Of a stretch of 64,000 nucleotides of DNA, positions 913 to 6,774 are shown in pieces (the stretch's first letter is position 1; the number at the start of each line of letters is the position of its first letter). The notes below the pieces were generated by a model, which searched no databases, was not told the origin of the DNA, and saw only the letters and a list, made by a program, of their open reading frames with translations. This stretch comes from Epithemia pelagica. Taxonomy: Eukaryota > Protista > Bacillariophyta. Location of the stretch: positions 6,014,001 to 6,078,000 of the forward strand of contig OX337228.1 of the NCBI GenBank assembly GCA_946965045.2. The letters run 5' to 3'. Both the position numbers and the translations under genes were made by a program.

Positions 913-3230
913 ATGACGTCCTATGAGAGCCTCCTTGGCCGGCTTAAAGAGAATGTGGAAACAAGAGGAGACAAAACAGCCGTGACTTTTCTGGAACCAG
1001 GAGTTAATGGTGGCAAGGTTCAGAAATCCTTTACGTATGCTGAATTATGGGCCGAGACAAGTAAAGTTGCCTTGACGATCAAGGATCAAGGATTGAAAAA
1101 AGGAGACAAAGCTGTGTTGGTGTATCCTCCATCGTTGGATTTTATGATTGCATTTCTTTCATGTCTGTAAGTGTTCACATTCTTGATTGACGATGATTTT
1201 GGAGCAGTTGTCTGAAACATGGCTATAGAAAGCTTTCTGTCATTGCTGTACCTGTTTTCCCTCCCAATCCGAACCGACGAGACACTCTTCAAATGTTCTC
1301 CAAGATTGTGCAAGCATGTGAACCCCAAATTGTTCTGACAAATAAAGAATACAATCATCTGAAGAAACTTTCGGGTATCCGTGACGCCTTTTCTTCGTTC
1401 AAACGAAGACCTAGTGATTGGCCTGAGCACTTGAAATGGGCCATCACAGACGCCCCGCAAAGTGGAAAGTCAAGTCTCAGCGATATCGAGGATCTTCCTT
1501 CCGACACTAGTGACGTTGCATTTCTTCAATTCACCTCTGGATCGACAAGTGAACCAAAGGGTGTGATGATCACTCATGACAACTTAGCACACAACTTAAC
1601 AATCATTACAAACGAGCTCGAAGCGTCTGACGACACTGTTGTAGTATCGTGGCTCCCACAGTACCACGATATGGGATTGATTGGATCTTATCTCGGAGTG
1701 CTTTATTGTGGAGGATCAGGCTACTATATGTCTCCTCTCTCATTCTTGCAGCGACCAATGCTTTGGATGGAGGCCGTGAGCAAATATCGAGCGACTCATT
1801 TGCAGGCCCCCAATTTCGCCTTTAAACTCACGTCTCGGAAATTTATTCCCTCAGACTACTCTAGGGAGTCTCTGGATTTGTCGTCAGTCAGACATGTCAT
1901 CAATGCGGCGGAACCTGTTGATGAGGAAAGTATCGAATCATTCTATAAGCAGTTTCGACCGTTTGGCTTTCAGGAAGTCATTTTCCCCACATATGGTCTT
2001 GCGGAACACACAGTTTTTGTTTGCTCAGGAGGAAAACAACGTATGACCGCTGATAAAGAAACGCTGGAGACAAATGGGGAAGTAGTCGTTGTCCAATCGG
2101 AAGGCGACGTTTCGAAGAATCAAAACGTTTCCCGGTTGATCGGCTGTGGATACCCCGCCAGGCAAGGAGTTGATGTTCGGATCGTCGAAGTTGAGACAGA
2201 AAAGGAACTGGAAGAAGGAAAAGTTGGAGAAATCTGGATCCAATCTCCAAGCAAAGCTGCCGGGTACTACAACAAATCTGAAGAGACAAAAAAGGACTTT
2301 CACGGTGAATTGAAAGGGTGCGAAGACGAAGATGGTTACCTAAAAACGGGGGATCTTGGTTTTCTTCACAACAAAGAACTTTTTATCACAGGGAGAATAA
2401 AGGACTTGATCATTGTGGGTGGGCGCAACTACTATCCCCAAGATATTGAAGGAACTGCTGAATCAACGTCACCCTCGCTCCGGCCCGGGTGTTCGGCAGC
2501 GTTCACTATTGATCAGACCCAAGCAGGCGGTGAGGAAGTAGCACTCATCTTGGAACTTAAAGAGGTCCCTCCTCACAAGGATGTCAAAACTGTTTGTGAA
2601 TCCCTGGCAAACGAGATCAAGTCGGCAGTGAATCAAGAACACTCTCTTGGACTTGCTGAAATTGTGTTACTCCAGCCTCGGACAGTTCCCAAAACTAGCA
2701 GTGGAAAGATTGCGCGTTCATGGTGTAAAAAGGCGTTCATTGCAGGTACTCTCAGTGTAGTTTTCCGAAAAAATTATTCCACTGAAAAAGCATCGTTGGA
2801 GATTGACTCAAGCAATGTCGTCGATCAACCTCGACCTATATCCTCTGTAGACGCTGACGCAATCAGGGCTTTAACCAAGAATGAGCTCGTGACGAAACTG
2901 ATTGCAGACGTCGCACGTGTTGGCTCAGTTCCCCCTGAGTCTATTGACAAAAATGCCCCAATTGTAACCATACTCAACTCTCTTGATATCTCACAATTCA
3001 AGGGTTTGTACGAATCAAAGTATGCCTGCAAGATTTCGGATGAATACATGTTTCGCGAAAGCACTACAGTTTCCAAGCTAGCTGACATTGCCAAACTTGG
3101 GCAAGCTCCAGATGACGACGGGAACAATGTATCACAGAAGGCGCAAGACAGTACAATTGTTGAAGGGAATGCAGGTGGACTTGCTGGGTGTCTTGGATGT
3201 CCACCAGGGGTGCGATGCACAATACTGTAG
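913..3230 (+). CDS. Fatty acyl-AMP ligase (FAAL)-like adenylation enzyme with C-terminal acyl-carrier-like domain and CaaX tail; 2 exons (913-1166, 1229-3230)
   Basis: Intron 1167-1228 (gtaagt...ctatag) joins FLSCL to KLSVIAVPVFPP. FAAL-type motifs: FLQFTSGSTSEPKGVMITH, SWLPQYHDMGLIG, APNFAF, NAAEPV, YGLAEHTVFV, TGDLGF, GRIKDLIIVGGRNYYPQDIE, PKTSSGKIAR. ACP-like segment with LNSL at about 2883-3100. Ends in CTIL*. Confidence 0.9.
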
Positions 3231-3350: not shown

Positions 3351-4906
3351 TTAGGCCCAGACCCACAACCAATCCTCGTCGCTTCCATCTTGCGGAGCAG
3401 AGGATGATTCTGTACCGCGATGGTCAAGTCCCAGAACCGCAATAAAGCCACCGGGATGACGCTCAATCAACTCGAAACCTTCTTCGGCTCCTTCATACAA
3501 ATCTTTCTGGCTGGCAGATTCAGAAGACTTGTCGGCAAAGGAGTGCCAACTCAAAGCTCGCTGTGCCTTGATTTCCTTGTGAAGCTCCTCTCGAGCATAT
3601 CGGTAAAGCAGAAAAAGTCCAATCACAGCAAACAAAACACCGCCAACCATCAATGCGATGTAGAAAACGTATTCTCCAGTGTCATCTGCTTCAGTCCTTC
3701 GAATATGGTCAGTTGTTGCTCCAACCAACACCCACAGAACGATAGTTGGGATTATTCCAATCAAGGCAAAAGTATATTCTTCGAGCGAAATCTGGGTAAT
3801 GCCTCCAACATGGTTTAACGCATTGAAGGGTATGATTGGACAAAGGCGTAGCAGGGTCATGGCCCTAAAACCCTGTGTACGCATGGCCTCATCCAGGCAT
3901 TTGACAATGGGAAATCGCTTCGAAAAAAGTTCGACGAGGTCACGCATCATGTATCGACTCCGTAGAAAAGCTAAAATAGCACCCAAGCTCGAACCAATAA
4001 AACAGACAACGATTCCGGCGACGAGCCCGCCCCAGAAACCAGCGACATCACAGAACGCGTATCCAGCTCCAAAATATAAGATGGTCGGAGGAACAAAGAA
4101 CAGCGTTGCAAGCACAAAAAAGCCTGAAAGGTTGAAATTAACGCACGTTGTCAACAAGAACCGCTCCATAGAAAAGTCACTTCCACGTTCATAGATCTAC
4201 GTACCAAGAAAACATATAACTGCACCAGCAGGGTGCTCCGTCATCCACTCCAAAAACTTAGTGATGAGGGTCATAATGTATCCTAGAAAGAGAGAGGAAT
4301 GAGCTCGAGCAGTGGGTAGTTCCTTCGACCTCACAGCATATACGCTTACGTACCGAGAAAAATCAGATCAATGATCACATACATACTTATACACACAATA
4401 AGTGCACTGAGATGGAACGACGTCCACAAGAAAAAAGACACGAGATATCAGAGAATCAAACTTGTACAAAACATGTGACCAAAAGTCCTCATTGGTACCT
4501 ACGTCATGACCTTTTTCTTCCAGCTTCTGTTCTTGGCAAATCTAAGCAGCTCCCAGAAGAAAGCAACGTCTTCCTCCTGATTGCTGTCCTGTGGGGTATC
4601 GGTTTTCGAACCCTGTTGATTGTTCTCCACAGATTGTTCGCCTGCTGTCTGTTCTTCCATAGATACATAGTCGGAAGGGGCTTCGCCCGCCATGGACTTG
4701 GTAGATTTGCCCATTCTCATAAGGCCCGCTTTTTCTTTTCGTTCTCTGATTTGAATAGTCCTGTTCAAGTCGTCTATATCCGCGAGAAAGTCTTGGTGAG
4801 GATTTCTTCGGGTATTCTTCTTCTGTTTGGCTTTATCCACCTTATCCTGAACATAATTAGAAATAGACGAGCAAGATTTGCTAAAGAAGCCAAAGGGTCC
4901 TCTCAT
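3351..4906 (-). CDS. SNARE-associated Golgi / TVP38-TMEM64 (VTT/DedA superfamily) membrane protein; 4 exons, 5' end uncertain
   Basis: ORF 4499-4906 splices through two small exons (..WKKKVMT|ALIVCISMYVIIDLIFLG|YIMTLITKFLEWMTEHPAGAVICFLG|FFVLATLFFVPP..) into the 3351 ORF. Family motifs GSSLGAILAFLRSRY and LLRLCPIIPFNALN are present. Confidence 0.85.
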
Positions 4907-5400: not shown

Positions 5401-6774
5401 ATGACCATGGTCGGCAAGAGACCGTCTCCAGAATCTGGTACCGAAAGCAACAAACGCATCATGACCGACTCTAAACCAATGACAAAGGTCCTTATCTATG
5501 GTGGAAAGACGGGATGGATTGGTGGACTGATGAATAACCTTTGCAAGGAAAAGGGTGAGTCAGCAATGAATCACGTCCATTGTTGCATTGGTGATCTGAT
5601 GATTGGCCTACGCTGGATCCCACCATGTAGTCTAATAGTTATTTTCTTTCAGGGATTGAATGTTATAACTCCGAAGTACGCATTGAAAATCGTGCCGACG
5701 TCGAAGAAGAACTTGATCGCATCAAGCCGTCTCATGTTCTCATGTCTGCGGGGATTACTGGCCGCCCCAACATTGATTGGTGCGAAGAACACAAACCCGA
5801 AACTATCCGAACCAACGTGATTGGAACGTTGAATGGTAGGTGAATGAAATAGATCGGTGCTGCACAGAGTCGCGCTTTTATTTTTGTTCTATCGGTTGGA
5901 TTGAGAAAATCTCATCATTTTCATCCATTGTCGATGCTATTGTTCAGTCGCCGACCTTACCTTCTTGAAGGGTATTCACTGCACGGTTTACGCTACGGGT
6001 TGTATTTTCAAGTACGACGAAACCCATCCCTTGGGATCAGGAAAAGGCTTTACGGAAGAGGATAAGCCTAACTTTGATGGATCATTCTACAGTCAGACAA
6101 AGGGATACATGGAACCCATGCTCAAGACCTACAGCAACTGTTTGATTTTGCGTGTTCGCATGCCCATTTCGGATGATTTGATTCAGTAAGTTCATGTCTA
6201 ACGGTAGCATGAGAGCAATGCCAGTGAGCGAATGATGAGGAGCATTATGGTGTCATTGGCCTCACAAGTTTTCGCCAATCCTTTGTAACATTTATTTTGT
6301 TCCATACACAGCCGTAGCTTTGTGACAAAGATTGCAAAGTATGAAAAGGTTGTCAACATTCCAAACTCCATGACGATTTTGCACGAAATGCTTCCAGCCT
6401 CTCTTGCCATGGCACAAGCTGCCCTTACCGGTGTCTACAACTTTACGAACCCAGGAGTTATTTCCCACAACGAAGTATTGGACCTCTTCAAAAAGTACAT
6501 TGATCCCACGTTTGAGTACAGCAACTTTACGATTGAAGAACAGGCAAAGATTCTCAAGGCTGCTCGTTCCAACAACGAGCTTGATGCCACCAAGCTTTTG
6601 AGAGATATGCCCGAGGGTGTTGTGATCAATGATATCAAGACTGCTTTTGATTTGTGTTTCCAGCGCATGAAAGCAAATCTTGAAAAAGAAGGCATTCTAC
6701 CCGATAATCTTCCCGCTGAATTCAATCATAAAGTCAATGGGGGAACCGGAAAACCGGTAACCAAGGCTTCGTAG
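5401..6774 (+). CDS. Nucleotide-rhamnose synthase/epimerase-reductase (NRS/ER, UER1-like 3,5-epimerase/4-reductase); 4 exons
   Basis: Motifs KVLIYGGKTGWIGG, ENRADVEEELDRIKPSHVLMSAGITGRPNIDWCE, ATGCIF, SFYSQTK, LRVRMPIS, VNIPNSMTIL, GVYNFTNPGVISHNEVL. Three GT-AG introns (starting about 5555, 5836, 6186) restore the frame. Confidence 0.93.

Follow-up and report, generated by a model that had tools for sequence, protein, structure and literature searches.

The stretch of DNA analyzed here (the window, 64,000 nucleotides of the diatom Epithemia pelagica; positions 6,014,001 to 6,078,000 of the forward strand of contig OX337228.1, assembly GCA_946965045.2) contains near its beginning, at 913–3230 on the forward strand, a gene encoding a protein of 750 residues that is composed, in this order, of a fatty acyl-AMP ligase (FAAL) adenylation domain, a carrier-protein domain resembling an acyl carrier protein (ACP), a disordered linker, and a Cys-containing tail, GLAGCLGCPPGVRCTIL, which ends in a CaaX prenylation box. 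The elements that an earlier note, made from the letters of the sequence, had listed for this gene were all recovered where it had placed them, and the two-exon structure with an intron is an addition to that description. Exon 1 (913–1166; 84 codons and 2 bases, with the ATG at 913) encodes the N-terminus of the adenylation domain and is followed by a 62-nt intron with GT..AG borders (1167–1228) and by exon 2 (1229–3230), whose open frame covers the rest of the FAAL domain, the carrier domain, the linker, the Cys/CaaX tail, and the TAG stop codon at 3228–3230; joining of the two exons restores ...FLSCLKLSVIAVPVFPPNP, the same as the orthologue consensus. A contig of the public run X4 (3844 nt) starts at 872, lacks exactly 1167–1228, as expressed in the joint 1166|1229, and is colinear with the genome from 1229 to past 3600, stop codon included, with no second joint. 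Since the intron is missing from this contig and the other three runs carry unspliced DNA, it is taken to come from a transcript. No upstream ATG is present in it between its start and 913, and both the CaaX-coding bases and the stop codon lie inside the spliced molecule; the 3′ end of the mRNA is not fixed by it, because the contig continues about 1.2 kb into the convergent neighbouring gene. A paralogue search of the own genome found a single copy at E 1e-10 or better. Single-base differences between assemblies (samples of one study) occur at 752 (C>T), 2045 (G>A), and 2272 (A>G); they are probably alleles or strain differences and leave the codon of the carrier Ser and the tail untouched.

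The two exons were searched separately (exon 1 as 913–1164 and exon 2 as 1230–3227, 666 residues), and the residue numbers used below are those of the exon-2 product. An ANL adenylation fold is indicated by matches to PF00501 on exon 2 (E 1.3e-48) and on residues 12–84 of exon 1 (E 2e-10). The motifs LPQYHDMGLIG, NAAEPV, and YGLAEHTVFV, from which the earlier note had proposed an FAAL rather than an acyl-CoA-ligase type, are located in the exon-2 product, and the proposal is borne out by family models, solved structures, and fold, all of which rank FAAL best. The leading NCBIfam models are those of FAALs (NF004509, 340.8 bits; FadD32, 323.9 bits; NF009124, 318.8 bits), the best non-FAAL-like model named as a coenzyme A (CoA) ligase being the generic long-chain NF004837 with 124 bits; the scores lie under the curated full-length cut-offs because exon 2 alone was scored and the protein is eukaryotic. 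In sequence matches to the PDB, the top 12 (all at E 1e-55 or better) are FAALs, the closest solved protein being the FAAL domain of the Synechococcus olefin synthase (7R7E; E 5e-96, 36% identity over about 520 residues), and 3KXW (Legionella FAAL), FadD32, FadD23, and the Escherichia coli FAAL are further close relatives. The AlphaFold model, built from 42 sequences with a mean predicted local distance difference test score (pLDDT) of 74.7, likewise retrieved only FAALs as its top 28 Foldseek matches, with a probability of 1.00 to FAAL structures.

The determinants by which FAALs turn away CoA can also be recognized. In the E. coli enzyme (EcFAAL), the elements described as blocking the CoA pocket are W224, P226, M231, F279, and the FAAL-specific helix 252–258 (Patil et al. 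2021; PMC8460268), where bulky W, M, and F residues fill the canonical pocket and a Pro stands at the alternative one, and W141, P143, M148, F196, and helix 169–174 of the window protein follow one another at the same offsets (+2, +7, +55, and +28 to +33), a comparison made by residue spacing, not by a printed alignment to 3PBK. W141, P143, and M148 belong to the SWLPQYHDMGLIG motif of the large N-terminal subdomain (AMP-binding, PF00501), which occupies 1236–2270 on the forward strand; in the orthologue alignment A1, P143, M148, and F196 are invariant and W141 is nearly so. YGLAE and GEIWI are separated by about 78 residues. The segment after YGLAEHT (2022–2144, forward strand; exon-2 residues about 265–305), which we take to be the place where the FAAL-specific insertion sits in FAALs, aligns to 7R7E with a single one-residue gap, in what is a comparison among FAALs only, and is folded as strand–strand–helix in the model. 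The small C-terminal subdomain of the adenylase (2403–2759, forward strand) matches PF23024 (AMP-dom_DIP2-like; 29.8 bits, residues 392–510), and the 7R7E alignment runs through residue 511.

The C-terminal domain, which had been described earlier as carrier-like on the basis of its helical character and an LNSL serine, was identified as a carrier protein by a family profile, by PF00550 in its relatives, and by an alignment of stramenopile family members in which the Ser is invariant. It is encoded by 2847–3113 (forward strand) and forms a four-helix bundle in the model (helices 550–565, 584–597, 604–607, and 614–623; pLDDT 70–91 across the block). The predicted 4′-phosphopantetheine site, Ser584 (2979–2981, forward strand; context I-L-N-S-L), opens helix 2. 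It is the sole invariant column among 27 stramenopile ACP sequences, is invariant in A1 as well, and is aligned with the DSL serine of solved ACPs. The mupirocin ACPs, the Pks13 ACPs, and mycosubtilin synthase are among the solved carrier proteins matched (E 1.6e-14) by the profile A2, which was made from these 27 sequences, and PF00550 is matched by 25 of the 27 (best E 3.4e-13). We consider the predicted FAAL-ACP chemistry of the window protein very likely.

The carrier domain is followed by a variable linker (3114–3176, forward strand; pLDDT below 50 at residues 629–649) and by a conserved tail, NAGGLAGCLGCPPGVRCTIL (3177–3227, forward strand), both unstructured in the AlphaFold model. The 25–30 residues ahead of the GCP[PA][GH] motif cannot be aligned across orthologues, and the last 17 residues are conserved as GLAGxLGCPPGVxC(C)aaX. 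The motif itself, mostly GCPPG, is present in all 120 search sequences, window product among them, and its Cys657 (3198–3200), a candidate S-acylation site, is invariant in A1 together with P658; CPxGx(1-3)C lies inside the last 16 residues of 118 of the 119 diatom orthologues. The protein ends in the box C-T-I-L (3216–3227, forward strand; TGC ACA ATA CTG TAG = 3216–3230), with a Leu at X as in substrates of geranylgeranyltransferase I (GGTase-I). The earlier note had considered that orthologues might lack the terminal Cys or the carrier Ser; instead, Ser is invariant and Cys stands at position −4 in 118 of the 119 diatom orthologues (54–74% identity), the single exception being a truncated sequence. 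Their boxes follow the pattern C[TSAVIN][IV][QLMSI] (CVIQ, CVIL, CTIL, CVIM, CIIQ, and the like), with Q at X in 57 orthologues, L in 32, M in 22, S in 6, and I in 1, and transcripts of the MMETSP collection that are marked complete have the same type of ending. At the other end of the protein, the alignment to NF004509 (profile span 3–80) pairs position 3 of the model with residue 5 of exon 1, and the orthologues start likewise; there is no N-terminal presequence, and the protein is therefore expected to be accessible to the prenylation enzymes of the cytosol. Altogether, the protein is probably cytosolic, prenylated, and also palmitoylated, as predicted from these features, and anchoring of the FAAL-ACP to a membrane is a prediction that we hold with considerable assurance.

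The cysteine tail is not confined to diatoms. An exhaustive search of 1.8 billion cluster representatives for relatives, followed by construction of a FastTree tree of 83 rows, placed the stramenopile FAAL-ACP proteins in one clade of 46 rows (support 99), whose members score 590–890 bits with the diatom profile, versus 330–570 bits for FAALs attached to megasynthases. CaaX-like endings occur in the bolidophyte Triparma (...PPGLCCSVM), so that the box noticed in a single sequence is conserved across diatoms and in this relative, and also in a Thalassiosira paralogue (...GCCGCVVM) and in Phytophthora (...KLFCGCIAC), whereas Chrysoparadoxa and many other relatives end in Cys clusters such as NCPCLLLCCPKLIRKKKK, LCPWFVCCY, and KKKKKGFFSICGC. 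The full-length stand-alone members with a seemingly intact C-terminus have 2–8 Cys at the end, often as CP-x4-CC together with a polybasic run. Rows of the clade without an anchor look truncated, so that the complete C-termini are all membrane-tied in prediction, by a CaaX box, by Cys clusters of which some have a basic patch beside them, or by a transmembrane acyltransferase domain. The lipidation-type Cys tail predicted here is, on this evidence, a family-wide trait of the stramenopile clade, older and wider than diatoms.

The last-mentioned type of C-terminus provides a lead to the acyl acceptor. In a subclade with a support of 98, nested in the 46-row clade, the tail is replaced by hydrophobic or transmembrane helices and a DAGAT (DGAT2-family) domain, with PF03982 matched in five of the six members at E 1e-10 to 3e-39. 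These fusions of chrysophyte-type stramenopiles (P0128, P0145, P0149, P0156, P0157, and P0178) are 44–49% identical to the window protein in the FAAL-ACP part and have the same carrier Ser; P0157 is from the chrysophyte Chromulina nebulosa, and P0128, P0145, P0149, and P0156 are metagenomic or transcriptomic sequences. The window protein itself has no DAGAT match in Pfam and ends 17 residues past the linker, being a relative of the fusions and not a member. The natural FAAL-ACP-DGAT2 fusions point to a DGAT2-type acyltransferase as the likely acceptor class and make it the leading option for the window protein, although only a tentative one. The own genome contains nine DGAT2-like loci with xPHG motifs. 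Two of them (L019/L022; G000:C3:3016862-3019039) are DGAT2-like genes in tandem with an HPHG motif in both, and a third (L015) shares its contig with the window, about 155 kb away.

Different C-terminal partners were met elsewhere in the search. Three pelagophyte members (P0159, P0199, and P0266, from Pelagophyceae sp. CCMP2097 and Chrysophaeum taylorii) carry a C-terminal extension of about 270–330 residues that contains a hydrophobic stretch and has no Pfam match. The extension was also tried as a divergent DGAT2, with BLASTP at E 0.11 and hhalign at E 0.009 and a probability of 4.5%, and was not used; its slight similarity to the SGAQLVP block of DGAT2 is not significant. Residues 1–1200 of P0124 (2624 residues), which falls in the outgroup of the tree, comprise an FAAL, an ACP, a class I/II aminotransferase resembling α-oxoamine synthases, and then a second FAAL, which represents another coupling of FAAL-ACP to a lipid-building enzyme.

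Enzymes that would modify the window protein are represented in the genome. Loci were found for the β subunits of the CaaX prenyltransferases farnesyltransferase (L004) and GGTase-I (L006), and for that of Rab geranylgeranyltransferase (L005), the three being told apart by their best solved relatives, as well as for the processing enzymes ICMT (L008) and Rce1-like proteases. There are also two loci of the phosphopantetheinyl transferase family, one related to PptT/Sfp/EntD and the other (L003) with no solved relative.

Taking these results together, we propose, with a probability of roughly 0.6 for the reading as a whole, that the window protein is a cytosolic, lipid-anchored FAAL-ACP that feeds an acyltransferase in the membrane, the DGAT2 family being the likeliest one. 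In the predicted sequence of events, the FAAL domain would adenylate a free long-chain fatty acid, and the acyl group would then go to the carrier domain of the same protein, onto the phosphopantetheine at Ser584, instead of to CoA. The CTIL box would be geranylgeranylated by GGTase-I and then trimmed and methylated, the orthologues with Q, M, or S at X being farnesylated instead, and the invariant Cys in GCPPG would probably be S-acylated as a second signal. The acyl-loaded carrier domain would in this way be tethered to the membrane via a flexible linker of about 30 residues. An integral membrane acyltransferase, most probably a DGAT2-type one, could there receive the acyl chain in trans, so that free fatty acids would enter neutral or membrane lipids by a CoA-independent route. 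Prenylation, palmitoylation, phosphopantetheinylation, rejection of CoA, identity of the acceptor, and the membrane used are the parts of this scheme that we infer. A variant with little probability is that the protein acts as a self-lipidating sensor or gate for fatty acids, in which the Cys cluster would be both the anchor and an acyl acceptor from the protein's own phosphopantetheine arm; membrane residence would then report the supply of free fatty acids, and delivery to a DGAT2-type enzyme would occur only when fatty acids are abundant.

Several observations weigh against this proposal. The window carrier domain by itself scores 15.8 bits against PF00550, under the cut-off of 20.8 bits, and the residue before Ser584 is Asn in place of the Asp present in about 90% of the orthologues; Gly and Ser are also found there in relatives. 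The missing intron is what marks run X4 as RNA, its library type being unrecorded, and the genome search for CaaX prenyltransferases took in the β subunits of these enzymes. With regard to the acceptor, the xPHG catalytic motif is kept in two of the six fusions (P0156 and P0149). The others have deletions in the DGAT2 part, which may be degenerate or reflect incomplete gene models, and the fused domain in these four may be mainly an anchor. No clear orthologue of the fused DGAT2 was found among the nine loci of the own genome; the fused domains form a clade of their own, and hence no specific partner can be named. Neither does a comparison of the window with two other diatoms give a conserved neighbour that hints at one. 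When the ACP of P0156 was docked against its own DGAT2 domain, a score of 0.36 was obtained (best of three controls, 0.01), with at least 82% of contacts shared between runs and a partner pLDDT of at least 77. This mark is reached by 51 of 78 solved complexes and by 2 of 108 mismatched pairs, but among passes at or below 0.60 the wrong ones outnumber the right ones unless the pairing had been likely to begin with; the modelled pairing of ACP and DGAT2 receives weak support.

These reservations bear in part on a reading that keeps the anchored FAAL-ACP and changes the acceptor. The acyl group might be used for lysophospholipid re-acylation, the reaction of E. coli Aas, by an α-oxoamine synthase resembling serine palmitoyltransferase, or for N- or O-acylation of proteins or metabolites at the membrane, and the lack of an evident orthologue of the fused DGAT2 domain in the own genome, the catalytic motif missing from some of the fused domains, and the different C-terminal extension of the pelagophyte relatives, for which Pfam has no match, are all consistent with such a use. 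So are the aminotransferase fusion in the more distant P0124 and the bacterial FAALs reported to be fused to lysophospholipid acyltransferase (LPLAT) or AGPAT domains (PMC12820801, PMC8460268). Nevertheless, within the clade itself no acceptor domain other than DAGAT is found fused, the aminotransferase fusion falls in the outgroup, and the Aas model NF006386 gives the window protein 95 bits versus a cut-off of 1221, and we regard an acceptor of another kind as rather unlikely. A greater departure would be a classical loading module acting in trans for a polyketide synthase (PKS) or nonribosomal peptide synthetase (NRPS), in the manner of the bacterial FAAL-ACP didomains. The nearest relatives outside the clade are indeed FAAL domains that head megasynthases, and FAAL-PKS arrangements have been reported in Bacillariophyta (PMC12820801). 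The earlier note had seen no PKS/NRPS partner in the window, and this absence now extends to the whole genome: an exon-wise search gave no match to the NRPS condensation domain, and matches to the ketosynthase domain occur only in open frames of 161–687 residues, which fit stand-alone fatty-acid synthase enzymes, with no large PKS found. Because of the absent condensation domain, the small ketosynthase frames, and the unrelated, non-conserved neighbours, the loader role is unlikely here; considering also the separation between the clade and the megasynthase-attached FAALs by the diatom profile, and that loading modules are not characterized by conserved lipid anchors, we judge it very improbable.

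The remaining readings concern the tail and the chemistry. The Cys-rich C-terminus might bind a metal, respond to redox state, or serve as a docking peptide, the protein then being soluble, as could be argued from the fact that the most widely shared motif is CP-x4-C(C) and not CaaX. We find this improbable in view of the Cys located exactly at −4, followed by aliphatic residues at a1 and a2 and by only Q, L, M, S, or I at X, in all but one of the diatom orthologues, the lack of structure of the tail in the model, and the Cys clusters of the relatives, which occur together with hydrophobic and polybasic runs of the kind usual in S-acylated anchors or are replaced by transmembrane helices. That the protein is an ordinary membrane-associated acyl-CoA synthetase with a relic carrier-like domain would accord with the name acyl-CoA synthetase given to its orthologues in the source annotations and with Asn in place of Asp before the Ser in this species. 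It is hardly compatible, however, with a lead of about 200 bits for the FAAL models and structures, with the conservation of the residues that block the CoA pocket, or with a Ser that is invariant from oomycetes to diatoms, which would be unexpected for a relic, and we give it scarcely any credence.

The genes surrounding this locus (ankyrin, inositol monophosphatase, SPT16, DBR1, and Sec1) are unrelated to lipid metabolism. The convergent neighbour is a gene for a VTT-domain membrane protein of the DedA/TVP38 type (3351–4169, reverse strand), whose open reading frame (ORF) ends 121 bases past the FAAL-ACP stop; one X4 contig spans both genes, so that a 3′ overlap of the two transcripts is probable. 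This neighbour was examined as a clue to a partner and set aside, as it does not adjoin the orthologue in two other diatoms. In Pseudo-nitzschia multistriata, a gene with a pantothenate-kinase domain (L023, 1806–4174) is located two genes upstream of the orthologue, which is probably a coincidence, and no such gene is among the ORFs scanned 2–12 kb upstream of the window. A gene of the RmlD/epimerase type lies downstream of the orthologue in the two other diatoms (L023, 13923–15145; L024, 5420–5770). At the corresponding place of the window, the ORF 5401–5820 (forward strand) is similar to it by eye and has no Pfam match, and microsynteny is not established.

Lipid synthesis in eukaryotes outside the organelles is taught as being dependent on acyl-CoA. 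An FAAL-ACP kept from oomycetes to diatoms and tied to the membrane, as predicted here, suggests a parallel, CoA-independent channel that would lead free fatty acids into glycerolipids or storage lipids. Marine primary production is dominated by the host group, which is also a target of engineering for oils and eicosapentaenoic acid; the gene is a concrete, clonable candidate, and the natural fusion names the likely acceptor. A count of 2.9 FAALs per genome has already been reported for diatoms, and the enzymes have been counted in oomycetes as well (PMC12820801), and eukaryotic FAAL-like proteins such as DIP2 have been discussed as CoA-independent lipid enzymes (PMC8460268). A literature search, outside which most subscription journals lay, found no CaaX or Cys-cluster tail on an FAAL or a carrier protein, no FAAL-ACP-DGAT2 fusion, and no adenylate-forming enzyme or carrier protein that is prenylated; as far as that search goes, the window protein would be the first carrier-protein enzyme with a CaaX anchor. 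What is new is the predicted lipid-anchored eukaryotic FAAL-ACP and the lead that the fusions give to its acceptor, the FAAL-ACP didomain itself being already known.

The window protein is worth comparing with the systems in which one or another of its parts has been described. FAAL-ACP didomains are well known in bacteria, where the fatty acid is converted to acyl-AMP and then to acyl-S-phosphopantetheine (PMC11837247). HapA of hapalosin, NocH of nocuolin A, and the loading part of the cyanobacterial olefin synthase share with the window protein the order of domains, the fold, and the expected chemistry. However, these bacterial proteins are soluble, are encoded beside PKS/NRPS genes, and feed megasynthases, whereas the window protein is eukaryotic, predicted to be cytosolic, encoded outside a gene cluster, and provided with a conserved CaaX/Cys tail. 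Among eukaryotic FAAL-like adenylases, DIP2 and fungal CPS1, which belong to animals and fungi, resemble it in being of this class and through the PF23024 match in the C-terminal subdomain; DIP2 consists of a DMAP1-binding domain and two tandem FAAL-like domains, without a carrier domain or CaaX, in contrast to the one adenylation domain of the window protein, which is much closer to the bacterial FAALs. With regard to the anchor, the Ras/Rho two-signal type offers the nearest likeness, with a CaaX box after a disordered linker and a conserved upstream Cys, polybasic and Cys variants being found in relatives, although it is attached there to a small GTPase and here to a metabolic enzyme of 750 residues with a carrier domain. 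The FAAL-ACP-DGAT2 fusions of the Chromulina type are, like the window protein, membrane-attached at their C-terminus, but by way of transmembrane helices and the PF03982 DAGAT domain. With respect to function, the nearest analogues are E. coli Aas and the FAAL-LPLAT fusions noted in bacteria (PMC12820801, PMC8460268), the shared concept being CoA-free transfer from a carrier to a lipid. The window protein differs from Aas in that the latter is an integral membrane protein with a separate ACP and a PlsC-type domain. Aas, a membrane adenylating enzyme, loads free fatty acid on ACP and passes it to the lipid acyltransferase without CoA, and it is this logic that the diatom protein, with its carrier domain built in and its predicted lipid anchor in place of an integral membrane domain, would follow.

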